DNA of 62,978 nt, counting the filler, from Klebsormidium nitens (lineage: Eukaryota; Plantae; Klebsormidiophyceae): the NCBI GenBank assembly GCA_000708835.1. It is 9 parts of 9 records of this genome, joined end to end, with 100 filler letters (N's around TTAATTAATTAA, not from the genome) between each part and the next. Parts side by side here need not be neighbours in the genome. Positions count along the whole stretch, not along the records: positions 17,044 to 27,225 come from DF238166.1; 8 more parts are not named here. One strand, 5' to 3'. Position 1 is the first letter of the stretch; each line of letters starts with the position of its first letter. The notes beneath the pieces are model-generated. The model was given only the letters and a program-made list of their open reading frames with translations. It was not told the origin of the DNA and made no database searches. Position numbers and translations under genes: made by a program. This document shows, in pieces, positions 4,908 through 27,876 of the stretch.

Positions 4908-7269
4908 CCCATTTCTAGAGACTACGTAAAGTCTAGAAATGTTTATTCGAAGAGTCTTATCGAACAATTCACCACTATTATCGCACCCTAGCCTATTCGA
5001 TAATAGTCTATTCAAGTTGGTTCTGGGCCATCATGATCTAGGGCTTCAAAGCGCAGAGCGGTTAATATTGCCCATGATGATGAATCATGAAGCTGAAGCA
5101 GAGATCGCGGCGAAACTAAAATGGGGTTTGCACTAACCCTGATTGAAAATGCACCATCCGCGCAACTCTTAGGCTTGGCACAATTGGCGAAACGCGCACA
5201 GACTAGTACGGTAGCTGGCAGTGGCTGTTGGCCACTTTCGCGATAATGGTTTGGAAGGAAACGGTAATGGTCAGCAAGAAAGCTTTTCCGCGGCGGCCGC
5301 GTGCGGGTCTCTCACATATCTACAGTAGCTCACGGTTTTTCAAAGGCAGCTCGAATCATGTTATGGGCATGTTAACTATTAGTGTTGTCGTCAGAATGCT
5401 GAACTGCGTCTTGGATTTCGAAGCAGACGCCAACCAATGTAAACATCCTCTTGCTGCAGGCTTTTCGAATTGGCCGCGAACGAGTGATCTGGTGGCTCGG
5501 TCCCGTCTGGTCTACGTTGCTCGGTCTTGGACCAGTTCCGTGAATGTTTACTTTGCACCTGACGGCCCATACCCTTTCTACGACCGGACCCTGCTTTCTG
5601 GTAAAAGGACGCGTCGGGTAAGCGGAGCTGACATTCGACCGGAATAAGTCACTTAGCTCAAGCGAATTATATGTCCTCGTGGCATTGGTGATTGGCAGCG
5701 GGAGTTGCGGCAGGTCTTGTTCACCTTGAGCACTAGAAAACCGCCAGTAAGTTGTGATCACGTCATCAGCTGTCATAAGTCCATGTCCTTCTGAAAGGAG
5801 TTTGGTACGAAGTCAATTCCCAGGTTAAAAGCGGATGCGAGTCAAACTGTCTTTGGTGATTGCGATTTACAGGCCAGACTGAGAAGCTAGCTTGACTTGT
5901 TATGCACTTGCGTCTGCAAACCTTGTTAATTTACGATTGGATGACTTGGCCACTTGAGCCGTCATATGAATCTGATTTGTAGAGCAGCCATGCATGCTTG
6001 AGTCGAAGTTCGAGGGAAGGACCACTTTGAAGGCCACTGGTCGTAAGACCTCCGACATTGATGAAGCTTTTTCGATGTTTGATGCAGGAACAACGAGCTG
6101 AGTCTTCTGTTTTGCTGATCTGGAGATAATTAAGCCGAGATTCAAGCATTATTGAGTCAGGTTCCGTCAAGTTATGATATGTACAGATTAGTCCGTCATC
6201 TCTCTTGCTTGACTCCGGACTCTTTCTTTCTTCAGGACAGACCCTTGGTGAGGTACATGCGCATTCGAGGGTCTTCATGACCGTCGCTGCTGAAATGTGC
6301 TATTCAACTGGCATACTTAGGCAGGGCTGATAGATTCGACGAAGTTTACCTCGAGCCTTTGATTAGATTACAGACCTTATGGGCCGGCCTTATGACGCTG
6401 TAAGAGTTGATATGGTTTGATTGTAGATTTATTTGTATCCTGCCGTTTATTGTGTTGCCTTGAAGTCGATAGTTCATTTCTAAAGTTACAAAAGCAGGTT
6501 GCACAGGTTTTGGCGTCGAGGTGTCCTAGAAATAGCTCGGAGATTGTCATGCAAAGGTTTGCATCGCAACTTATTATGTTTGTTAATATGCGGATTGCAA
6601 TCGTGAGAAGGTCGGCACTCGTGAGGCTGCACGTTCTTAAGCATCCCTTTTATGAGCATGTTCTAAGCACGAAGCTTCAAGTGCATCATTGACTTGGAGG
6701 TACTGGAACTTAATATGTAGCTTGTAACGTTGGCATCGTTTACTACGTTGTCACGCTGATTTGAGCTTGGCAAACTTTTATTCTGCATGTCGTTGTTTGC
6801 ATGCGCGGCCCCGATCTCGCTTTTAGGGTTTAGCACGGCCGGCCGGGGCCCTATCGCCACACAACATAACCGCCAAGGCTCACTCATAGCCTATGCCGAC
6901 TGCTCGGTCCAATTCGCCAAGCTGACCGTCGATCGACTTCGTTTTTGCCCGGTTTTCCCTCCCGACCCTTAGAACGCGGCCCGTGGGAGGCCCTGGTAGC
7001 ACTTCTAGGGAGCAAGCTGAAGCTTGGGGAGGTGTTTTGCCAGCTGAAAGGCTGGTTCACAGAGTGCAGACCGTTCCTTGTATACACTAAACCTCTGCCT
7101 CATATGAGTCGAGTGACAATCGACTTACAAGCAATCTGCAGCGGCCTACTTTCTGATTCTCCTCATACTTCACGGCTTTTGAACGGGCAGTAGCCACGGT
7201 ATTATGTGTAAGTTGGAATACCCCTCGCCTCTTTCTTCCGCATCTCAAACGATCAAAATTGCAGGAATG

Positions 7270-16943: not shown

Positions 16944-17072
16944 NNNNNNNNNNNNNNNNNNNNNNNNNNNNNNNNNNNNNNNNNNNNTTAATTAATTAAN
17001 NNNNNNNNNNNNNNNNNNNNNNNNNNNNNNNNNNNNNNNNNNNAGGAACATGAGAAGCATCATGTCTACACC

Positions 17073-17468
17073 ATGGACGACGAGACGGTCGTGGAGACTG
17101 GCTTCCTGTACGCAGCCCGGGCGCCCGGATCTACGATAATGAAAGTCGGAATGTCCAAACAGCGGGACCCCAGCTTATACATAGCGAGACGGTACGCATT
17201 CGTTCTAGAGCCATTCGCCATCATGGGAGTGGCCGACGCCAACATGGCGGAAAAGATCGCATTCCACAAGCTGAAGCCATGGCACGTCACGCACGAGATC
17301 TTCGAGGCACTAGATTGGGAGTTGGTCCAAGACATATTCGAAGAGACTGCTTATCTAGTGGCTGACAGAGACCGTTGCTTAGAATATTGCAGCGAACACG
17401 GTATACCATTGGTGACAGAGGGCAGGAATACCAAGACGATACATCATTTCGAAGACTTCGCACTCTGA
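17073..17468 (+). CDS. T5orf172/MUG113-like (GIY-YIG-related) domain protein
   Basis: GFLYAA...KVGMS...AEKIAFHKLK...HEIFE pattern; intronless. Confidence 0.7.
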   Translation: MDDETVVETGFLYAARAPGSTIMKVGMSKQRDPSLYIARRYAFVLEPFAIMGVADANMAEKIAFHKLKPWHVTHEIFEALDWELVQDIFEETAYLVADRDRCLEYCSEHGIPLVTEGRNTKTIHHFEDFAL

Positions 17469-17477
17469 TTGCACATT

Positions 17478-17951
17478 TCAACGTTTGATGCCCACCACCC
17501 TAGAACCATCCGGCAACTCTACCTCTATGACTACATCAGGCGGCTTCGTATTCTCTGCTCGTACTACGCTAGGTGGTTCTACGACGGGTCCTGATAATGG
17601 CACTAGTGTCAACGGAGTCGTATCGTCTCTGTTACAATATCCTACGATCATCGCGACTGCAATCAGCATCTCTAAGAAACCTATACCTATGCACCCGTAC
17701 ACGAAGAGTCTGCCGGGTTGCCGAGTAGATCCCTCCGTCAGGAATCCTATCACCAGGAGCAAGAACTTTTGACAGCCGAATCTGACGTCCGAGTTGTATT
17801 CCAGACAGGGGGATAGAATGAAATAGAGGATGTCTAAGACGATGGGAACCAAGTAAGATAGGGGAATTTCGTTCCCCAGGGTGGACACCACCACCAACAT
17901 GAGGCTCGCTACTACCGCGTCCAATGCGAAGAGCACGGACGCCAGCATCAT
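17478..17951 (-). CDS. Hypothetical multi-pass membrane protein (viral segment)
   Basis: 157-aa ORF with about four hydrophobic segments, packed between neighbouring genes. Confidence 0.65.
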   Translation of the reverse strand: MMLASVLFALDAVVASLMLVVVSTLGNEIPLSYLVPIVLDILYFILSPCLEYNSDVRFGCQKFLLLVIGFLTEGSTRQPGRLFVYGCIGIGFLEMLIAVAMIVGYCNRDDTTPLTLVPLSGPVVEPPSVVRAENTKPPDVVIEVELPDGSRVVGIKR

Positions 17952-17956
17952 CCTCC

Positions 17957-18955
17957 TCAGAAGTCGTCCTCTACGAAATCGCCGTACGTCAGGCCTCCCT
18001 TCTTCCCCTTGTTCAGCGTCTCGATCACACCAGCCTTTTGATAAGAGCTCACGTGCGACTCGAACATGTTATTCTTGGACGTCAGGGAGATTAGTTCCAT
18101 AAACCCGAAGGGGTTCTTGCTGCCGTAGTGAGTCTCGTAACCGAGGCTATGGAGCAAGCGGTCCGCCACGCACTCGATGTATGCGGACATCAACTTCTGG
18201 TTCATCCCAATGAGGGAAACAGGGAGTGCGTCGCAAGCGAATTCCTTCTCTATGTCCACAGCCCCCTTCACGATCTCCAGGATCCTCTCGGACGACAGCT
18301 TCCGTACCAGCAGGTCGCGGTACAGGTGGCAGGCAAAGTCCGTGTGGAGCGCCTCGTCCTTGGCGATGAGCTCGTTGGAAAATGTCAGCCCCGGCAGCAG
18401 GTTCTTGCTCTTCAGCCAATAGATGGCGCAGAAGGAGCTGCTAAAAAGGATGCCCTCAACGCACGCAAACGCGACCAGCCTCTCAGCAAACGAGTCGGAA
18501 CTCTCTATCCACCTCACGGCCCAGTCCGCCTTCTTCTTCACGCACGGGATGCTGTCTATCGCCTCGAACAACCTGTCCTTCTCCTCGGGGTCCTTCACGT
18601 AGGTGTCGATCAGCAGGCTGTAGACCTCTCCGTGGATGCTCTCTATGAAGGCCTGGCAGGTGTAGAAAGCCCTGGCTTCCTGTATCTGCACCTCCGTCAG
18701 GAACCTGGTCCCGAGGTTCTCTATGACTATGCCATCAGCTCCAGCGAAGAAGGCCAAGACGTGCTTGATGAAGTGGCGCTCGTCCGCGGACAGCCTATGC
18801 TCCCACTCGTAGGCGTCCTGATCCAGCTGGATCTCCTCCACTGTCCAGAAATTGGCGACCGCCTTCTTGTAGAACGACCAGGTCTTGGGGTATTTGATGG
18901 GGAAGGTGCAGTACCTGTGAGGATCCGTCTCGAGGAGGGGTTCTCGTTCTGCCAT
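17957..18955 (-). CDS. RNR2: Ribonucleotide reductase small (beta) subunit, intronless
   Basis: [24 protein letters not shown] (radical Tyr), [10 protein letters not shown] and DEALH diiron motifs. The usual C-terminal ...F tail is present. Confidence 0.97.
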
Positions 18956-19085
18956 GTCTCAGAATGACGCCCTCGTACCTTACGACTGCACAACTTATAC
19001 ACGGTTTCGGACGCGAGCCGACCGTTTCGGACGCCCCGCGAGAAACATTCTGTGGAAGCCCTTTCGGACGCCGCTTTCGGGCGTC

Positions 19086-20165
19086 TCAGGCTTCGCCGTG
19101 GTAGATGTCGTCCACCAACTGATAGTCCACCTTTTTCACTCCATATCTCCTCTTGAATTCCTCGATGAGTCTCCCCCGCAAATACTTCTCGTTGGCACTC
19201 GTCATGTGCCCGAAATCCTTGTGCGTCGTCCGGATCAATTGCGCGAACTCCAAGCGAGAGTCTCCCTTTCGGGCGGCGAAGCCGAAATCGATCAACAGAA
19301 CTCGTCCGATATATTTAGTGCCCGGTCTGTACTTGAATGCTATGTTCTCCCAGTGGAGATCGCCGTGAGCGAGTCGCTTCTTCTGCATCTTGTCGATGAA
19401 TGATATGAGGACTTTGAGCATGACGTCTAGCTCCCACCTCTTGCGATCCCGTCTCAGCCACGATGACAGCGTGGAATCCACCTGCTGCATGAGGACGACC
19501 GACACTTTCTTCTGCTTACGGCCGTGCTTGATCTCGTCGAAGTCTAATCCGAACGCTCGCGGCGCCAATCCATTGCGCCAGAATTCGTTCTGTATGTCCA
19601 TCTCCACTCTATCTCGTGCTCTGTCGAGTTTCTTGGAGATCTTTGCGACGCGCCTCTGGCCGGTCTTCCTGTTTCGGACGAGGATCACCGACCCACTCGC
19701 CCCCTCGCCCAAGTGCTTTACGAAAGCCCACTTCTTCCAAAGCTTCATCGTAAAGCACCTCTCCGCCGCCAGGCACGGGGCCATGCTGCCGGTGCCTTTC
19801 TGACCGTTCATAGCTTTCTTCCATTCGGTGACGGAGAACCCTCCCTCGAATAAGTCGCGCCCCATCTTCTGAGCACCTTCGACCCCGGCTTCACACAGAT
19901 TCTGCTTCACGCCGAGCTCCGCGAGTCCCTCTCCCGTGATCCAGTTCACCTTCTTCCCAGTCTTAAGCACGGCCGGCTTCAAGGCTTTCCTTGGTCTCCT
20001 CTCGCGCCGGGTCCTCCGTCTCCTCGGGACTTCGAGTCTCTCACGGTGCACTCTACAGTATCGATAGTCGCCCGACCCGCAGGCCGCCTTGTTCTTGCAC
20101 CGCGTACCGTTCTTGGTCGGAGCTATGCAGCGTCCGCACGCCTTTTTCTTACGAGCTCGCGCCAT
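19086..20165 (-). CDS. Viral-type Ser/Thr kinase with N-terminal Cys/His module and Arg/Lys-rich linker
   Basis: LGEGASGSV, VAKI, HGDLHWENI and LIDFG motifs. N-terminal CIAPTKNGTRCKNK...YCRVH. Confidence 0.9.
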   Translation of the reverse strand: MARARKKKACGRCIAPTKNGTRCKNKAACGSGDYRYCRVHRERLEVPRRRRTRRERRPRKALKPAVLKTGKKVNWITGEGLAELGVKQNLCEAGVEGAQKMGRDLFEGGFSVTEWKKAMNGQKGTGSMAPCLAAERCFTMKLWKKWAFVKHLGEGASGSVILVRNRKTGQRRVAKISKKLDRARDRVEMDIQNEFWRNGLAPRAFGLDFDEIKHGRKQKKVSVVLMQQVDSTLSSWLRRDRKRWELDVMLKVLISFIDKMQKKRLAHGDLHWENIAFKYRPGTKYIGRVLLIDFGFAARKGDSRLEFAQLIRTTHKDFGHMTSANEKYLRGRLIEEFKRRYGVKKVDYQLVDDIYHGEA

Positions 20166-20233
20166 GTATCTCTCGTATGATTGAACGCGATATATTTTTC
20201 GTCCGTTCAGTGTAATCTTCGAAGCAAAGAGAT

Positions 20234-20920
20234 ATGATGCACTTCATAACATTCGGTACTCATGGAATCTACAATGATTTCGCACGTCAGCTGGCCAAGA
20301 GCGCGCTAGCAGCCGGCTTCGACACCGCGACGGTCTACGACGAGACGGATCTAGACCCCGCGTTCCGGGAATCTCACAGGGACGTGCTCGCACTCCCGCG
20401 TGGCTTCGGAGCGTGGTGCTGGAAGAGCTATTGTATACTTAAGCGTCTGAGTGAGTTGGAGGAAGGAGACGTCGTGACTTACTGCGACTCTCTGTACGCG
20501 TTCAAGAGGGACTTTAGGGAGGCCGCGGAGGACTGGCTAAAGACCCAAGACCTGGTCTTGTTCGAGAACAAGCCTTCGGAGCCGAGCTACAAGGAGAGAC
20601 ACTGGACCAAGTACGAGGCCTTCTGCATCTTGGGTGCAGACCCCGAGGTGCATGGACAGACGTCGCAATGCTGGGGTGGATTTCTGATGTTACGCAAGAC
20701 TCCAGAGACCGTGAGATTCATCCAGGAGTGGTACGATAGATGTGCCAACGTACGCCTGATGAGCGACGAAAGAAGCGTTCTAGGAGAAGAGCTTCCGGGC
20801 TTTATCGAACCGCGCCAAGATCAGATGGTCCTCAGCCTCGTAAGCAAGACGAAGGGTCTAGGATATCCTTTCTTGCATTTCCCGGCGGATCTCATGTATA
20901 ACGTCAGGATAGGCAGGTAG
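20234..20920 (+). CDS. Putative glycosyltransferase-like protein of a type common in giant viruses
   Basis: FITFG...RGFGAWCWKSYCI...GDVVTYCDS...RQDQMVLSL pattern, recognised from memory of the family; 228 aa, intronless. Confidence 0.6.
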   Translation: MMHFITFGTHGIYNDFARQLAKSALAAGFDTATVYDETDLDPAFRESHRDVLALPRGFGAWCWKSYCILKRLSELEEGDVVTYCDSLYAFKRDFREAAEDWLKTQDLVLFENKPSEPSYKERHWTKYEAFCILGADPEVHGQTSQCWGGFLMLRKTPETVRFIQEWYDRCANVRLMSDERSVLGEELPGFIEPRQDQMVLSLVSKTKGLGYPFLHFPADLMYNVRIGR

Positions 20921-21025
20921 CACTAGACGTGAAGGTTGCATTAGCTGTTTTACGGTTGGATGAACTAACGCAGACAAGTGCGTTCAAACCCTGACCCTTT
21001 TTCTATAGGGATATGTCAAACACAG

Positions 21026-21721
21026 ATGGGGTATGTCAGGTTGTCCGAAGCAGCCAACCACTTCGGTGTATGTACCAGGACTCTCATCAGATGGGAGGCA
21101 GCCGGAAAGATCAAGGTCGAGCGTAGCCCTGGAGGCAAGCGTATCTACGACCTCAAGAGCCTCGATCCCTCCAGCGAGCGCGCCTCCTACATCTATACCA
21201 GAGTGTCCAGCCAGAAACAGAAGAACGATCTTCGACGTCAAGAGTCATATCTGCGTGACCAGTACCCCGGACACTCAGTTATCAGCGACGTCGGAACGGG
21301 CCTCAACTTCAAGAGGAAGGGACTTCTATCCCTTCTGGAACAGAGCGAGAAGGGACTTGTACGAGAGGTTGTGGTTGCCTCAAAAGACAGACTGTGTCGT
21401 TTCGGATTCGATCTGCTCTCGTGGTTCTTCGAAAGACACGGTGTCCGCCTCGTGGTTCTCCAACAAGACGATAAGTCTCCGGAGGCAGAGCTGGCAGAGG
21501 ACGTGCTCGCGGTCGTTCAGGTGTTCGGTTGTCGATGGAACGGGAGAAGAGGTTACGGAGGAGGAGAAACAGAACGAAGAAAGCGAGCAAAAAGAAGCAG
21601 AGGAGTTGATCAGGATGCGAAAAGTTCGGATCCTCCCGAAGAAGTATCAGAAGAGAATGCTGAACGACTGGAGGCACGCGGCTCGATACAGCTACAACAA
21701 GGCCGTTTTCCTCATGAATGA
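21026..21721 (+). CDS. tnpA: IS607 TnpA serine recombinase (MerR-like HTH + resolvase catalytic domain)
   Basis: RLSEAANHFGVCTRTLIRWE (HTH), YTRVSSQKQ (catalytic Ser), SDVGTGLNFKRKG, DRLCRFGF, ELAEDVLAVVQVF. Confidence 0.95.
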   Translation: MGYVRLSEAANHFGVCTRTLIRWEAAGKIKVERSPGGKRIYDLKSLDPSSERASYIYTRVSSQKQKNDLRRQESYLRDQYPGHSVISDVGTGLNFKRKGLLSLLEQSEKGLVREVVVASKDRLCRFGFDLLSWFFERHGVRLVVLQQDDKSPEAELAEDVLAVVQVFGCRWNGRRGYGGGETERRKRAKRSRGVDQDAKSSDPPEEVSEENAERLEARGSIQLQQGRFPHE

Positions 21722-22769
21722 GACCGCGAGCTTCAATAAGATGTACCTCCGAGACATGATCACCCCAGCAGAAGTAAATGGAGACAAGCCACACCTCTTG
21801 AAGACACCCAAGGACGTGAGGGCCGCTGCGGTTTTCGAAGCGGCCAAGAATGCCAAAGCCTGCTTCAGCAATCGAGAACGTGGGAACATCACCGGGTTCC
21901 GACTCTCCTTCAAGACGAGGAAAAGGGAGGACTCGAAGGGGTGGTGCTTGGGGATCGCAAAGACTGCTATCAAGCGCAGGGGCGATCGCACCCTGATCAT
22001 CTACGGAGATTATTGCCCTTGGGAGTTCGAGACATTGGGTGCCATCGGCGAGATCACCAAGGACTGTCAGCTGCAATTCGATGGTGCCAAGTATTATCTC
22101 CTGGTGCCCTACTCGAAAGCGCATCCAGCAAAAGTGAAGGGAAACGCCAGATCTCTCATCAACGAGACACGAGAGGCAGTGATAGCCCTGGACCCGGGAG
22201 TCAGAACATTCCTGACCGCCTACAGCCCCAGCGAGGCATACAAATTGGGCGATGGGTGTGCGCAACGCCTCTTCTCGTTGGCTATCACCTTGGACAGACT
22301 GCTCGCTTTCGAGAAGCGCATTCCGAAGGACCATAGGAAGAAACGAAGAGCAGTGAGATTGCGAATCATCAAGACACGAAGAAAGATAGCTCATCTGCGT
22401 GACGAGATGCACTACAAGGTCGCGGACTTCCTCACACGAAAAGCGAAGATCATTCTGTTGCCGACATTCGAGACCAGCGAGATGGTTCGAAGATTCCAAT
22501 GGCGGATCGGGAGCAAGAGCGTCAGGCAGATGTCGTTCCTGTCACACTACAAGTTCACACAGCGGCTGATAGCCAAGGCTGCTGGAAGGGGAGTGAGAGT
22601 CCTGATCGTTTCCGAGCATTACACGAGCAAGACCTGTGGCAGGTGTGGGGAAGTGAAGCAAAACCTAGAGGGTGCGAGGATCTTCAAGTGCGGAAGCTGC
22701 TTCGCAGTCATAGACAGGGATTGCAATGGTGCTCGGAACATACTACTTCGTGCGATACGAAGGAAGTGA
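21033..22769 (+). CDS. tnpB: Fanzor2 / TnpB RNA-guided endonuclease
   Basis: RYSYNKA, RuvC-I ALDPG, LLPTFETSEM with the relocated Glu in SEHYTSKTC, zinc ribbon CGRC...CGSC, RuvC-III DRDCNGARNI. ATG at 21033; alternative ATG at 21615. Confidence 0.95.
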   Translation: MSGCPKQPTTSVYVPGLSSDGRQPERSRSSVALEASVSTTSRASIPPASAPPTSIPECPARNRRTIFDVKSHICVTSTPDTQLSATSERASTSRGRDFYPFWNRARRDLYERLWLPQKTDCVVSDSICSRGSSKDTVSASWFSNKTISLRRQSWQRTCSRSFRCSVVDGTGEEVTEEEKQNEESEQKEAEELIRMRKVRILPKKYQKRMLNDWRHAARYSYNKAVFLMNETASFNKMYLRDMITPAEVNGDKPHLLKTPKDVRAAAVFEAAKNAKACFSNRERGNITGFRLSFKTRKREDSKGWCLGIAKTAIKRRGDRTLIIYGDYCPWEFETLGAIGEITKDCQLQFDGAKYYLLVPYSKAHPAKVKGNARSLINETREAVIALDPGVRTFLTAYSPSEAYKLGDGCAQRLFSLAITLDRLLAFEKRIPKDHRKKRRAVRLRIIKTRRKIAHLRDEMHYKVADFLTRKAKIILLPTFETSEMVRRFQWRIGSKSVRQMSFLSHYKFTQRLIAKAAGRGVRVLIVSEHYTSKTCGRCGEVKQNLEGARIFKCGSCFAVIDRDCNGARNILLRAIRRK

Positions 22770-22870
22770 TTCGCCCCTCGGGGCGACTGCAAGATGGAGC
22801 CATGGCGAATATGTCATGCTTAGCCTGACAGACCACCGGACGATTGTATAGATGTCACGGTCTGTTCAGT
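22770..22870 (+). ncRNA. Putative omegaRNA/fRNA scaffold at the IS607 right end
   Basis: Three consecutive stems right after the Fanzor stop: TCGCCC-ctcg-GGGCGA (22771-22786), CATGGC...GTCATG (22801-22818) and TGACAGACC...GGTCTGTTCA (~22826-22868). This is where TnpB/Fanzor guide scaffolds lie. Confidence 0.65.
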
Positions 22871-22880
22871 GATTGATCCA

Positions 22881-23099
22881 TCAGACCAAGGGAAGCCACC
22901 AAGGCCCAGAGCATAGCATCAGTACCACTATCACCCCTATGAGCAGACCCGTTCCCCACTTCTCGACTCTCTTGCCTCTCGCCGCGACGGTCGCATTCGA
23001 GGACCTGCTCATGTCCCAACCCACGGCCGTCAATACGATTCCGATGAGTACGAGCAAGGTCACTACTGCAATGGTAGCAAACTCTACCGTACGGTCCAT
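22881..23099 (-). CDS. Small two-TM hypothetical protein (viral segment)
   Basis: 72-aa ORF with two hydrophobic helices and an AT-rich upstream spacer. Confidence 0.6.
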   Translation of the reverse strand: MDRTVEFATIAVVTLLVLIGIVLTAVGWDMSRSSNATVAARGKRVEKWGTGLLIGVIVVLMLCSGPWWLPLV

Positions 23100-23153
23100 G
23101 ATATATATATACTACTTTTGAACAGGAAATAAAATGTTCAACATCTGTTATGT

Positions 23154-23780
23154 ATGCGGATGAATGACTACACGCTTCTCATCCCTGGATTTGGTTCCAC
23201 AAAGACAGCTATAGAATCTATAAGAGAAATGCTTAGAGTAAAGTGCACAGGGATGATCGAGGTCTTTGACTACGACACGAGAGGTATCTGGGATCTCGGC
23301 AACTTTTTGCGTAATAGACTATTCATCAGCACAAAGACGGACAGGTTGACGAGGCTGCTGACTAAGCTCTCCGAAATCACGAGCCTGCCTTTGGACGTTC
23401 GCGTGCACATCATCGCACATTCACATGGGGCTCTCTTGCTACACAAGGCTCTCATGACGCTGTCAATCTCGGCTCGACACCAGCTTCAAGTGCAGAACGT
23501 CACGGTGGACGCATACGGACCTGCGAAGCTGATCCCTGCCTCGTGCGAGCATTACGCGCTCCGGGGCGCGACCAATCACTTTCACGAGAAGGATTGGATT
23601 CTGAGGTTGCATGGAAGGTTGCAGAGGACCGACGAACCCGAATTCGATCACAGGTCTTCCGATGGGACCGTCTTTCATATCAAGATGACCAAAGATCCGC
23701 GTTACGCTTCCGGTAGAGATGCACACCAATCCTACTACGACGAGAGCATCTGGGACGCCATGGGCTCTTGCAAGATTTGA
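23154..23780 (+). CDS. Alpha/beta-hydrolase (lipase-like) protein
   Basis: LLIPGFG oxyanion-type loop, IIAHSHG nucleophile elbow, C-terminal DAH. Confidence 0.7.
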   Translation: MRMNDYTLLIPGFGSTKTAIESIREMLRVKCTGMIEVFDYDTRGIWDLGNFLRNRLFISTKTDRLTRLLTKLSEITSLPLDVRVHIIAHSHGALLLHKALMTLSISARHQLQVQNVTVDAYGPAKLIPASCEHYALRGATNHFHEKDWILRLHGRLQRTDEPEFDHRSSDGTVFHIKMTKDPRYASGRDAHQSYYDESIWDAMGSCKI

Positions 23781-23827
23781 GGGTGGGCAGAGCCCCAAAA
23801 TAAAATCTTTCTATATAGCAAGAACGC

Positions 23828-24244
23828 ATGTCTAACATCACGATCGCTCCGGGGAGTCGTGCATACGTAAAGGATAACGACTTATTCGGAACCGTGACGC
23901 GTACCAATCTCTTAGGCCTGTCGAACACTCCGGTTATCCAGCTGGACGATGGGAAGAGCCAAGCATACATCGGACCACTGAGGAAGAACGTGGTGGATGC
24001 CGAGAAGAAGGTAGATTTCGATGGACAGAGCGTTTCGGTGCCACTGGATGTGTTTGGCGTGGGCAGAGACCAACTGACCGCGTTCGGGGTCTCGGCGGAG
24101 AAGCAGAACCAGATGTTCCAGAAGTGGAGAACACTGCCTAAGAATCAGCAAGAGGCTTACACTCAAAGCTGGGACTCCCTGGACAAGAACGATTCTACCG
24201 CTCTGCAGGGGTTCCTTCAAGGGATGATAGATGCTCTCTCCTAA
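23828..24244 (+). CDS. Hypothetical protein (viral segment)
   Basis: 138-aa intronless ORF filling the space between neighbours, with protein-like composition. Confidence 0.65.
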   Translation: MSNITIAPGSRAYVKDNDLFGTVTRTNLLGLSNTPVIQLDDGKSQAYIGPLRKNVVDAEKKVDFDGQSVSVPLDVFGVGRDQLTAFGVSAEKQNQMFQKWRTLPKNQQEAYTQSWDSLDKNDSTALQGFLQGMIDALS

Positions 24245-24249
24245 TTCAT

Positions 24250-24840
24250 CTAGCTCATCTTCGAGGCTACTACAGCTGCAGCTGCTCGCAGCACCTCCCG
24301 TGCACTCTGACGACCATCTATGCGGTACACCTCGTCGAAGTGAGCTTCCTCGCTGGAGAGGAAGTCGTGATACTTCGCCTCCAACTTCTTCAAATAGGCC
24401 AGAGTGAGCGGCGTCTCCGCCTCTCTCCCCCTCTTGCGTGCGCGTTCGAAGCAGACCTCAGCTGGAGTGTCCACCCATATGCAGATCTTGGGCACCTCCA
24501 GCTGCTGCGTGCTCCGGTCATATAGCTGCCTGAAAAGGGCCCATTCCTCAGGGTCCAGAGTTCCGTCCTCGTGCAGGAGCTCTCCAAAGACGAACCTGCA
24601 CGAGGCGGGTGATCTCTCTATGAAGCTGAGTCCGGTGCGCTTGGGCATAGACATGAAGCTGCAGAGGACCTTAGTCTGCAGTGCAAAAGCCCATCTCCTT
24701 TGGTCTTCATAAAACCTACGCAACATAGGTGCCCACTCATCCACAGGTTCCAGCTCGATAGGGCATTCGAAGAGTCGCCCCAGACCTTCAAGGAGAAGAC
24801 TCTTGCCACTACCTATGGAGCCTTCGATCGAAATATTCAT
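24250..24840 (-). CDS. Deoxynucleoside kinase (dNK family)
   Basis: IEGSIGSGKS P-loop, EPVDEW, FYED..RWAFALQ, ERS and RARKRGR lid. ATG at 24840. Confidence 0.93.
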   Translation of the reverse strand: MNISIEGSIGSGKSLLLEGLGRLFECPIELEPVDEWAPMLRRFYEDQRRWAFALQTKVLCSFMSMPKRTGLSFIERSPASCRFVFGELLHEDGTLDPEEWALFRQLYDRSTQQLEVPKICIWVDTPAEVCFERARKRGREAETPLTLAYLKKLEAKYHDFLSSEEAHFDEVYRIDGRQSAREVLRAAAAVVASKMS

Positions 24841-25836
24841 TTTCGGAATCTGTGTGTCCGAGACGCGCCACACGCCCCTCTTCTTATATAGACTGCCGCT
24901 TTTCGGGCGCTGCTCTCGGGTCCGCGTCCGAACAGCGTATTTTTCGCTACCATGCACGCGACACTCCCGTCTTTAGTTCCACGCTTGCCACTTGTCGAGA
25001 CAGGGTGTCGAACTATCCGAAAGTCTGCTGGCTTACATGACCCTCACATGGCAGTGGTGCCACTTGTTCAACGGTACATCTAAATCTCTCTTCTTATTGG
25101 ACGAATGTACCACCTAATTGTGAGGAACGTGTGCGTGGTACTTGACTGGCGTTGACTTCGACGGGATTCTTGCCCATATCTCGGATATCAACCATTAGCG
25201 GGAGATATTACGTCACAATATCCAAGTACAACATTATTAATAACAATATCAGTACGGTGCCCATTGGTTCGTCATAGAATGCACCTGAAGTACATGTCAG
25301 CAACCCTAATTGATCCGTATATTCTATCAGAAATATATATTTGCTCGGCAGTGTCTAAAATTTTCTTTCGTATACCATAAGTCCGAGGTAGTGGTAACCG
25401 CCGCTGATGAGCAGTCTGAGTCACAACTGAGAATGATCATTGGCACTTTTCACGTGTATATTTCAGTTTCGGGCGCGATGGCTACCCCAGGCGCGTTGCC
25501 TATAGCCTTCTCGGCTTCCCTTCCATTTCCACTTTGAAGATACACATACCACATAAAGCAAGAGCTCAAACATCACTGCTTCCTCCAGCATCGCTCACGC
25601 CTCCACGCCTCCTGAAAAGCGCTCACCTGGCTGACGGAGGAGCATGCCATCATGGCATCCGGGTTCTTTTCGGCAGCAGACGATGCGGGGTGAGAATCCT
25701 GGCCGAGCTGTAGCACACTTCCCTCTTTCTGTGCAATTCCAATCGCTACGCATCTGCTGTGTGCTAGACCTTTGCAAGAGAGAGGGTGGGTGGATCTCAC
25801 CAAATTGCTTCTCCAGCCCTATTATGTAGGCAGCCT

Positions 25837-25985
25837 AGAATTGCATTCAGCAGGGTGGTGGGGATTAAGAATTGCATTCAGTAGGGTGGTGGGGATCAAG
25901 AATTGCATCCAGTAGGGTGGCTTTTAAGAATTGCATCCAATAGGGTGGTGGGGTTTTAGTAGTTGCATCCAGTAGGGTGGCGGAG
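25837..25985. repeat. G-rich ~31-bp minisatellite, five copies
   Basis: Unit agaattgcat(t/c)cagtagggtggtggggat(t/c)a repeated head-to-tail with no spacers. Confidence 0.9.
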
Positions 25986-26280
25986 TACTGAATCTTAAGT
26001 TCAAAAGGTTTCACCTTGGGTTTCTCTCAAACAACCCGTCGACCGATCAGAGCAAATTCAGATTGCCTACAATTCAGATTCAGATTGTATATGCTCTAAA
26101 CCTGTAAGCTTGATCTGAGCAGAATCGCAGAGTTGCAGGGTTAGGGTTCCTTTTCCCTGCTCTCTGCTTGGATTTCTTCCTAGAAACTCATCAAAGCTGC
26201 AGAGTGGTGGTGAAGTCTGATACTTTGTGTGTAGGGTTCTGGATTCTGCGTGGATAAACCCTTCTCTCTGCATATTTGCA

Positions 26281-26552
26281 GATATGAAGCTGCACTCGCG
26301 ATTGAGCACAGTGTGGCTGGAGAGATCAACGACGGGTTTGTGGGTTTCCTTCTCGGGGATCGCTTGAGGCTAGAAGCAGAGCTGGAGTTGGCCAGACAGG
26401 CAGCCGAGAAGGTTAATGATGAGAACACGCGGTTGCGCATTCAGATGGAGATGCGCGACGAGGAGATCAAAAGGCTGAAGAGCAAAAGGGGGCGCTCTGA
26501 TCATCTTGGCCTGGAGCTACCTAACGCCAGCACTCACACGCAGTCAAGCTAG
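26281..26552 (+). CDS. Probable terminal exon of a coiled-coil host protein; upstream exons not identified
   Basis: Pyrimidine-rich acceptor ...tttgcag at 26280, then RLEAELELARQAAEKVNDENTRLRIQMEMRDEEIKRLK to a stop. Confidence 0.4.
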
Positions 26553-26705
26553 ATAAGGTCGAAAGTGATCATGAGGTAACCTTTTAGCAATCGATTGCTA
26601 TATGTGCCAAGCACGATCAATTTCGGACGGCGTTCCGACTCGCGGATCAGGGCAAACCTCTTGTTGTAGAAGGTGCAAGTGTAGAGTCGTCTGACTTTTG
26701 CACCG

Positions 26706-26930
26706 AGGTTTACGTGGAGTTTTGGTAGTTGAGACCACGGATGGAAGGCAGAACCGGTGTTTGAATAGTAAGTTGAGTCGAGGTGTAACATAGTTTGTAA
26801 CTTAGTTGTACTTGTACCAAGGTTTACGTGGAGGATTGGTTGTTGGAGATCACGGATGTAAGACTAAACCGGTGCTTCGAATAGCTGGGCTGAGTCAAGG
26901 TGTAACTTAGTTTGTAACTTAACTGTAAGA
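26706..26930. repeat. Diverged ~115-bp tandem duplication
   Basis: ggtttacgtggag...aaccggtg...ggtgtaac(a/t)tagtttgtaactta occurs twice in tandem. Confidence 0.75.
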
Positions 26931-27876
26931 TGCGGGTTGGGGCCGCGCAACTTACAGTGGTTCTGTGTCTGTACGAATAGGATAGTCTGATCTATGCTCG
27001 TCGATAGAATCCACTCATCTATAGATACAGTCTGTTCAGAGTAAAATGGCACACTCGCCACAGTACCCAGCCGTATCTCGGATTCTCACCGAAGTGCCTA
27101 GATGAACTCGTTTCTAGGCAGCTATGTCTTTCGACTAATTCTCAGTCATCCTCACAATGCTGCTCTCGTGAAGTCCGCTGGCCTGCCCTCGCCTCTGGCT
27201 ATGCTCATACAGATCCAAGCTATGTNNNNNNNNNNNNNNNNNNNNNNNNNNNNNNNNNNNNNNNNNNNNTTAATTAATTAANNNNNNNNNNNNNNNNNNN
27301 NNNNNNNNNNNNNNNNNNNNNNNNNCCCAATGCAAAAAACTCGACTCGATTTGGATGAGTTTGGACCACTTCGTGACCCAAAACGTGACCTAGGGTTCTG
27401 CAGGCGGTTGAATGCCATACTTCCACCTTAAGCTGAGACTCAAGTCTGAGAGTTCTGCAAGTTGACGATCTGTAATAGGCTTCTCAACTTCAGCCCTAAC
27501 CAGCCCTAACTCTTGGTTTGTCAAAACACGTTAAACCCTTCCTTACATAACCGTATTATTAGTCTGTAACGTGTCCCCAGAGAAGCTTGGTGAACGTTAC
27601 GTACAAAGCTGAGCACGGTTGGATTCCCTGAGTAACCCCAGTCGTAACACTTACTACAAACCCAGAGGATCTGGAAGGTGGAAGGGGGCCGCTACTAGAA
27701 CTCTGACTCTGACACTGACAGTGAGTGCACTCGTTGAGTTCACGTCCTTCTTCCTCACTTCTGTGGTGGAGGGAATGTTTGGCGTCTTCTGGGGTTCCAC
27801 GGTGCGTTGCGAGGACCACCAAAGGTGATGACCGTTGGCAGGGCGTCTCAAAGATAGGGCGTGACGGGTTTCAGCG

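Follow-up and report, generated by a model that had tools for sequence, protein, structure and literature searches.

An intact IS607-Fanzor2 element in giant-virus DNA of a Klebsormidium nitens assembly, with a nuclease gene that most likely spans the whole of tnpA

The DNA analyzed here, referred to as the window, is a stretch of 62,978 nt (filler included) made of nine parts from nine records of the genome assembly of the streptophyte alga Klebsormidium nitens (GCA_000708835.1), within which the 10-kb piece at 17044-27225 (DF238166.1) was examined. Two open reading frames (ORFs) on the + strand stand out in this piece, encoding a transposase, TnpA, and a nuclease of the Fanzor type. Very probably they form an intact 1.95-kb insertion sequence of the IS607 family and Fanzor2 type, recently mobile and located between two convergent genes of a Nucleocytoviricota-like giant virus, with a nuclease that is a 578-aa protein, the ATG of which lies 7 nt beyond that of tnpA. 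The giant-virus DNA of the window is related to sequences in the K. nitens assembly, and the element is a further example of an established class. As judged from the alignments and frame analyses described below, it is most likely that in this IS607 clade the nuclease gene extends over the entire tnpA gene, where the N-terminal domain of the nuclease would be encoded.

The bounds of the element were set by the alignment of seven copies (the window copy included), which are 72-95% identical and lie in unrelated flanks, all of them giant-virus-like. The closest copy (L001), on the K. nitens scaffold DF237727.1, is 94.9% identical to the window copy over 1962 nt (20934 to 22885), and five further copies, one on K. 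nitens DF237878.1 and four on ENA/JGI metagenome contigs, are 72-83% identical and share the same start and stop points. An earlier note made from the sequence alone had placed a complete element at 20921-22870; its completeness stands, whereas its bounds have been corrected from the seven copies to 20934/20936-22884. The left junction dinucleotide, GG (20934-20935, + strand), is the presumed crossover site, as indicated by the left-end alignment, by the empty site described below, by the GG target of IS607 (PMC6188088) and by the GGG motif of ApmFz2, the Fanzor2 of Acanthamoeba polyphaga mimivirus. Homology among the copies begins immediately after it with a non-coding left end of 90 nt (20936-21025, + strand), and the element finishes with the right junction dinucleotide at 22883-22884 (+ strand), located by the right-end alignment and the empty site. 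GG occupies 13 of the 14 junctions of the seven copies. In the left-end alignment, the 5' flank has the form A-(A/G)-G-G and is presumed to be the transposon-adjacent motif, its G-rich character agreeing with the GGG motif of ApmFz2.

The empty site was found in L171, a related virus-like contig (90% identical in the small chain of ribonucleotide reductase, RNR) with a gene order collinear to that of the window, in which nothing lies between the homologs of the two ORFs that flank the element and GG is present at the insertion point. A search of the ends of the window element detected no terminal inverted repeats, and the alignments of the junctions of the copies and of the empty site showed no target-site duplication. 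As a GG target, GG at the ends and the lack of both inverted repeats and duplications constitute the signature of IS607 (PMC6188088), the window element fits this family. Scans for sigma-70 promoters and terminators gave nothing exceeding shuffles, the conserved right-end 21-mer had no match in IMG/VR and a single spurious one in metagenomes (L173, where the 21-mer alone matches), single-protein pattern scans of IMG/VR and JGI metagenomes retrieved no relatives, and exact-sequence look-ups of ten window proteins returned one match only, a 138-aa ORF on a Logan contig.

The presence of copies at different sites, together with the empty site, argues for the mobility of the element, with transposition predicted to be carried out by TnpA. 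The ratio of nonsynonymous to synonymous substitution rates (dN/dS) was 0.06-0.25 for both genes in the copy pairs distant enough to be measured, which indicates that tnpA and the Fanzor gene are under purifying selection and hence not open by chance. The mean pairwise identity was highest in tnpA (85.4%), compared to 80.7% in the 3' non-coding part, 74.7% in the Fanzor core and 62.6% in the left end. The window copy is unbroken, with no stops and no frameshifts in either gene, whereas among its relatives the long frame of L007 is interrupted once, the Fanzor part of P0018 is incomplete, and on one contig the gene is divided between two ORFs (P0016, P0041). Intact genes could also belong to a copy that is now fixed in the virus genome, being no longer mobile or having been co-opted by the virus, e.g. 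as a weapon against viral competitors. Such a resident would be consistent with the departure from GG at one element end, with the single copy in the 10-kb piece, with the neighboring small ORF having adapted its end to the element edge, and with the reported packaging of Fanzor proteins in the virions of an algal giant virus (bioRxiv 10.1101/2024.09.03.611062). Given the 95%-identical copy at another site and the purifying selection acting also on tnpA, we regard a fixed copy as rather improbable, and prefer a recently mobile element.

The first gene, tnpA (21026-21721, + strand), encodes an intact IS607-family serine transposase of 231 aa, as supported by family models, PDB matches, its invariant serine and its dN/dS. 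TnpA reaches 162.6 bits with NF033518, the NCBIfam model of IS607 transposases (cut-off 110), contains the Pfam MerR-like helix-turn-helix (HTH; residues 7-41) and Resolvase (residues 55-177) domains, and has as closest solved relatives in the PDB the catalytic domains of the ISC1904, ISC1926 and IS1535 TnpA proteins. Its catalytic serine, S61 (21206-21208), lies in the sequence R-V-S-S and is invariant in 9 aligned relatives, in agreement with the intact TnpA that had been read there before. From about residue 178 the tail of the protein is variable and rich in K and R. A run of these residues, encoded at 21575-21601, resembles by eye a nuclear localization signal in the window copy and in L001, L003 and L004; the same DNA read in the Fanzor frame encodes an acidic linker.

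The TnpB-homologous core of the nuclease (384 aa; 21615-22769, + strand) was assigned from family models, alignments and fold. It scores 111.6 bits against NF040570, the model of the RNA-guided TnpB family (cut-off 100), and 70 bits against PF07282 (Cas12f1-like TNB domain), and it contains a split RuvC of the form D...E...D with a C4 zinc ribbon ahead of an R-D motif. In the numbering of the 384-aa core, these residues are D193 (22191-22193), the rearranged RuvC-II glutamate E334 beside the zinc ribbon (22614-22616) and D369 (22719-22721), with the zinc-ribbon cysteines encoded within 22635-22700; in an alignment of 24 relatives D193, E334, R368, D369, C341, C344 and C362 do not vary, while C359 is conserved to at least 90%. 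The counterparts of D193 and E334 in ApmFz2 (also called ApmFNuc; mimivirus L79) are D324 and E467, residues whose mutation eliminates cleavage (PMC10530073), E467 being the essential glutamate of Jiang et al. The earlier identification of an intact Fanzor2 with three RuvC acidic residues and a zinc ribbon was thus upheld, and RNA-guided DNA cleavage can be predicted for this nuclease from its intact catalytic residues and its homology.

The best solved relative of the core by sequence is mimivirus L79 (chain 9b0l_P, E 5.9e-26). An AlphaFold2 (AF2) model of the core, with a mean predicted local distance difference test score (pLDDT) of 84.4, gave as top Foldseek match the same mimivirus Fanzor2 complex (9b0l, E 1.1e-20), followed by the structures of the ISFba1 and ISDra2 TnpB proteins. 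Because the mimivirus Fanzor2 tops both the sequence and the fold matches, while the Spizellomyces Fanzor1 (SpuFz1) ranks only 49th by fold (E 7e-5), the window nuclease is, by sequence and by the fold ranking of its model, of the Fanzor2 type and not a Fanzor1. Its context is also that of a Fanzor2, with tnpA in the same element and giant-virus-like neighbors. ApmFz2, itself part of an IS607 element, is the best match by sequence, profile and fold, and shares with the window system the catalytic D, the rearranged E, an N-terminal extension with an S-W-aromatic motif, an IS607 TnpA partner, a flank motif rich in G and, at the right end, an omegaRNA of about 200 nt (presumed in the window). Nevertheless, the two nucleases are only about 23% identical, the extension is of 134 aa in ApmFz2 and of 194 aa in the window, and the host virus lineage differs from mimivirus, being associated with a streptophyte alga and having 52% GC.

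A Fanzor of K. nitens, KnFNuc, has already been characterized (Jiang et al. 2023). Like the window nuclease, it comes from the same alga in several copies without introns and is an RNA-guided nuclease (predicted for the window), and the closest named proteins to those of the element come from Klebsormidium; in addition, bacterial IS607 relatives with the same layout are 31-36% identical. That the element is KnFNuc itself, or a bacterial contamination, is nonetheless scarcely credible. KnFNuc is described as a member of the Fanzor1 clade with a TTA motif and focused nicks, in contrast to the GG-ending flank motif of the window element and the Fanzor2 that is its best structural relative (the two are set apart by published description only), and the genes flanking the element are viral, with a plant-like RNR, and not bacterial. 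The comparison with published Fanzors, on which the earlier note had made novelty depend, therefore separates the element from KnFNuc, but does not make it the first of its class, as IS607-Fanzor2 elements have been known in giant viruses since 2013 (PMC3627910) and were characterized in 2023-24 (PMC10530073, PMC11832414).

At the right end, a conserved fold that finishes at the element end is presumed to be the scaffold of the omegaRNA (fRNA), of about 240 nt (22644-22884, + strand), which would reach into the 3' end of the ORF; its 5' limit is approximate (about 22644-22663), and its non-coding part comprises the 115 nt after the stop codon (22770-22884). Folding of the last ~245 nt of the seven copies with RNAalifold rendered 63 pairs, in which 94.3% of the alignment cells are paired, compared to 35-43% when the partner is slid, with compensating changes in 12 pairs (25 cells), the slid controls having only 0-4 such pairs (0-6 cells). 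In the non-coding part alone, 97.2% of the cells are paired and 4 pairs are compensated, and a closing helix (22793-22797 with 22878-22882) lies directly before the right junction. These pair counts bear out the structured 3' non-coding end proposed earlier; no Rfam family matches the scaffold. Beyond the right end the flank differs in every copy, as expected of a guide read from the flank, which is the rule for TnpB and Fanzor (PMC10432273, PMC10530073, PMC11832414). The putative guide of the window copy would be encoded at 22885-22904 (+ strand), the flanks diverging directly after the right end and the length being taken by analogy with the 21-nt guide of ApmFz2.

The frame of the nuclease remains open upstream of the core, and its start is most likely at 21033, giving a protein of 578 aa, and not at the internal Met (21615). 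This long ORF (21033-22769, + strand), intact and in the +1 frame of tnpA, is supported by stop counts, the rate of synonymous substitution (dS), twin ATGs and motif conservation; its residues 1-194 overlap tnpA and constitute an N-terminal extension, and residues 195-578 constitute the TnpB-like core. The Fanzor frame is stop-free for the 578 codons from the ATG at 21033 to 22769, and five of the six other copies are likewise open, with stop-free stretches of 586-618 codons. Over tnpA, the +1 frame has no stops in 6 of the 7 copies, whereas synonymous shuffles of tnpA contain 3.2-4.7 stops in the Fanzor frame, with a probability of 0.001-0.012 of finding none for the six stop-free copies; nine control genes of the piece have 3.4-12.7 +1-frame stops per 100 codons, as predicted by their shuffles. 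Within the same copies, dS in tnpA amounts to 0.20-0.50 of the value for the Fanzor core, i.e. 2-5 times lower, and the internal Met is replaced by Thr in four close relatives. An antisense ORF of 396 aa (21309-22499, - strand) was discarded as a chance ORF, being present in the window copy only and not kept in the other copies.

The same layout was detected in distant relatives. In two of them, with about 35% identity, tnpA at 124-738 is accompanied by a 624-aa ORF from 128 (L008), and tnpA at 5997-6632 by a 594-aa ORF from 6001 (L009). In a wider survey of 80 IMG/VR loci and 80 bacterial loci, the nuclease was in frame +1 relative to tnpA in 50 of the 51 viral cases and 57 of the 59 bacterial ones, and its frame spanned 95% or more of the tnpA match in 31 and 46 of these, respectively. 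Stop counts made on non-redundant sets gave observed/expected values in the +1 frame of 0/14.3 for the window clade, 53/170.6 for the viral set and 7/71.6 for the bacterial set; the corresponding values in the +2 frame were 26/37.3, 500/495.2 and 216/216.0, the two large sets agreeing with expectation. In roughly half of the distinct loci, the nuclease frame has its first ATG no more than about 10 nt from that of tnpA, and in a second group this ATG is found at +64 to +73.

The viral relatives include the IS607-Fanzor2 elements of chloroviruses and other giant viruses (ISvAR158_1, ISvNY2A_1 and ISvMimi of Bao and Jurka 2013; L011-L090), which like the window element have tnpA and Fanzor2, the latter in the +1 frame and open over most or all of tnpA, but differ from it in a protein identity of 30-37%, AT-rich genomes and many copies without tnpA. 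The bacterial relatives are ISArma1-like IS607 elements of cyanobacteria, Candidatus Uabimicrobium and deltaproteobacteria (L091-L170), with the same two genes, frame relation, twin starts and S-W-F/Y motif as the window element, as well as a GG target without inverted repeats or duplications (PMC6188088); they differ from it in their prokaryotic hosts, 31-36% identity and short TnpB annotation. Many copies of the bacterial relative were seen in Heteroscytonema crispum and several Microcoleus strains, and at least 6 in the genome of the planctomycete Candidatus Uabimicrobium sp. (L097, L099, L101, L102, L111, L113).

The extension itself contains conserved residues. Across 24 long forms, conservation reaches at least 90% at F101, S140, W141 and F142, and an S-W-F/Y motif is present in 7/7 window-clade, 36/43 viral and 52/54 bacterial loci with tnpA. 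A profile of the long forms aligns with L79 from residue 76 (E 2.6e-62), placing S-W-F on S83-W84-Y85, which fall inside the structured N-terminal domain of ApmFz2 (residues 53-130); the RuvC-R subdomain (65-91) is resolved in its structure (PMC11832414). Schargel et al. called this domain unique to Fanzor2, and tnpA is nowhere mentioned in their work. On balance, we think it probable that the Fanzor2 N-terminal domain resolved in ApmFz2 corresponds to what is encoded in the +1 frame across the whole of tnpA, with twin ATGs 4-10 nt apart and about 190 codons read in two frames, a layout that would be conserved from cyanobacterial IS607 to giant viruses and Klebsormidium-associated copies and would allow one mRNA to produce both proteins. 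In the IS607 and Fanzor literature searched, a full tnpA-nuclease overlap is not mentioned, beyond the statement that IS607 ORFs "often overlap". That the full overlap arose to suit translation in eukaryotes was rejected, because bacterial relatives share it, and more cleanly. The overlap may rather have pre-adapted the clade to expression from a single mRNA, which may explain why this IS607 clade in particular was able to become established under eukaryotic cap-dependent translation.

Several observations weigh against the interpretation of the window locus as an intact element with a long nuclease and its guide RNA. In an AF2 model of the 578-aa form, only two short pieces of the extension, a helix (104-112) and a strand (145-147), reach moderate confidence (pLDDT about 57-63), with values <50 elsewhere in it; the linker before the core is acidic in the window, in contrast to the basic "thumb" of ApmFz2; one base at one of the two junctions of the window copy departs from GG; and the RNA fold was derived from only seven related copies, hence its modest covariation. 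The low AF2 confidence over most of the extension would suit a nuclease consisting of the 384-aa core only, translated from the internal Met at 21615 on its own transcript, with the upstream open frame as a by-product of tnpA composition, as would the short forms used in the public annotation of bacterial relatives (e.g. 395 aa) and the Pfam and NCBIfam models, which span the core alone. We consider this unlikely: the internal Met is not kept, stops are depleted family-wide in the +1 frame and not in the +2 frame of the two large sets, the S-W-F motif is conserved and aligned with a resolved part of ApmFz2, and the synonymous rate of tnpA is well below that of the core (2-5 times).

A further possibility, suggested by the gene models of K. 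nitens, is that splicing or a ribosomal frameshift of +1 joins TnpA and Fanzor into one protein. The models corresponding to our copies are P0001 (DF237727.1), whose locus is 94.9% identical over the whole element, and P0006 (DF237878.1), about 81% identical, and P0013 (KFL_003890030) represents a sister lineage with 58% identity; all are at other insertion sites and bear the names "transcription regulator HTH" or "hypothetical", and not Fanzor. The GenBank models (L001 2371-4123, L004 8767-11799, P0013) are chimeras in which predicted introns bridge the TnpA and Fanzor frames, the two parts being joined in P0001 and P0013. Natural in-frame fusions were also seen, with tnpA and nuclease in a single reading frame, in P0018, where the nuclease part is incomplete, and in L022. 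A fused product is very unlikely, since a short overlap would suffice for it, with no need of a frame open from the start of tnpA with its own ATG; moreover, active ApmFz2 is initiated from an ATG of its own and includes the N-terminal domain (PMC11832414), and the introns of the gene models were placed by a eukaryotic gene finder and are not common to the different copies. A separate 578-aa nuclease starting within tnpA is thus the reading we retain.

From established knowledge of IS607, TnpB and Fanzor2, a mode of action can be proposed for the element. TnpA, as a serine recombinase, would cut and join at a GG dinucleotide, leaving no terminal inverted repeats or target duplications. Transcription of the 3' end of the element would yield an omegaRNA with its final ~20 nt derived from the flank, and the complex of Fanzor2 and omegaRNA would cut DNA in which a G-rich motif is followed by the flank sequence, i.e. 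the unoccupied site. Genome copies without the element would in this manner be cut and then repaired from carriers, leading to its retention and homing. For their synthesis, one transcript could yield both TnpA and the 578-aa nuclease by alternative initiation.

Outside the element, the left neighbor is a viral ORF of 228 aa (20234-20920, + strand), with its stop 14 nt before the junction, whose homolog adjoins the empty site in L171. The right neighbor is an ORF of 72 aa (22881-23099, - strand) that now ends at the element edge; its uninterrupted homolog in L171 has 81 aa, which indicates that the insertion replaced the C-terminal end of this small ORF. Further genes of the piece encode an RNR small chain, a protein kinase and a deoxynucleoside kinase, collinear with L171, so that the assignment of the element to viral DNA holds. 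The best named relatives of the RNR small chain (17957-18955, - strand) are land-plant enzymes (60-66% identity), with unnamed proteins from SRA assemblies at 80-98%, which suggests that the gene was taken from a streptophyte host. All seven copies adjoin virus-type genes, including those for EsV_1_7_cys and DUF5901 proteins, a DNA ligase, TBP and a UvrD helicase. In two of them, other nuclease-like sequences were observed before the element: a second TnpB-like gene (654 aa, with a weak TNB match) at 1-1829 of L006, 4 kb upstream, and a partial second Fanzor match near 7246 of L004.

The earlier note had gone further, viewing the element as carried into a eukaryotic genome and as a direct snapshot of the virus-to-eukaryote route. 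The sequence does not show this: nothing host-like and no host-virus junction was identified in 17044-27225, where 24958-27225 has no long ORF, and none of the seven copies, all beside virus-type genes, is demonstrably in host chromosomal DNA, the closest of them lying on small K. nitens scaffolds with viral genes. The piece could instead represent a free or episomal giant virus sequenced alongside its host and not integrated in a eukaryotic chromosome. We hold this to be a serious possibility, though short of an even one: the ORFs of the piece are dense, intact and intron-free, its relatives are found on short scaffolds or metagenome/SRA contigs composed entirely of viral genes, and no host junction was seen, but close copies were deposited as K. 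nitens nuclear scaffolds, and the last 2.2 kb, without long ORFs and of lower GC, could be non-viral. That final region (24958-27225) has no ORF >100 aa, a GC content of 44-51% and no similarity to L171, and contains tandem repeats at 25837-25980 (31 nt x 4.7) and 26698-26921 (117 nt x 1.9); it may represent either viral repeats or DNA from outside the virus.

The element adds to the known Fanzor2 enzymes a lineage tied to a streptophyte alga and its giant viruses, about 23% identical to the mimivirus enzyme, and it comes with defined ends, a predicted guide-RNA scaffold and a G-rich flank motif; in addition, the GenBank models of this element in Klebsormidium prove to be chimeras. If the N-terminal domain is indeed written over tnpA, the protein would be about 190 residues longer across the IS607 clade than in the bacterial annotation, TnpA and the nuclease would be coupled at translation start, and the N-terminal domain of "eukaryotic" Fanzor2 would predate the move into eukaryotic viruses. 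The overlapping layout bears on the annotation and comparison of these nucleases, and on how TnpB became Fanzor.

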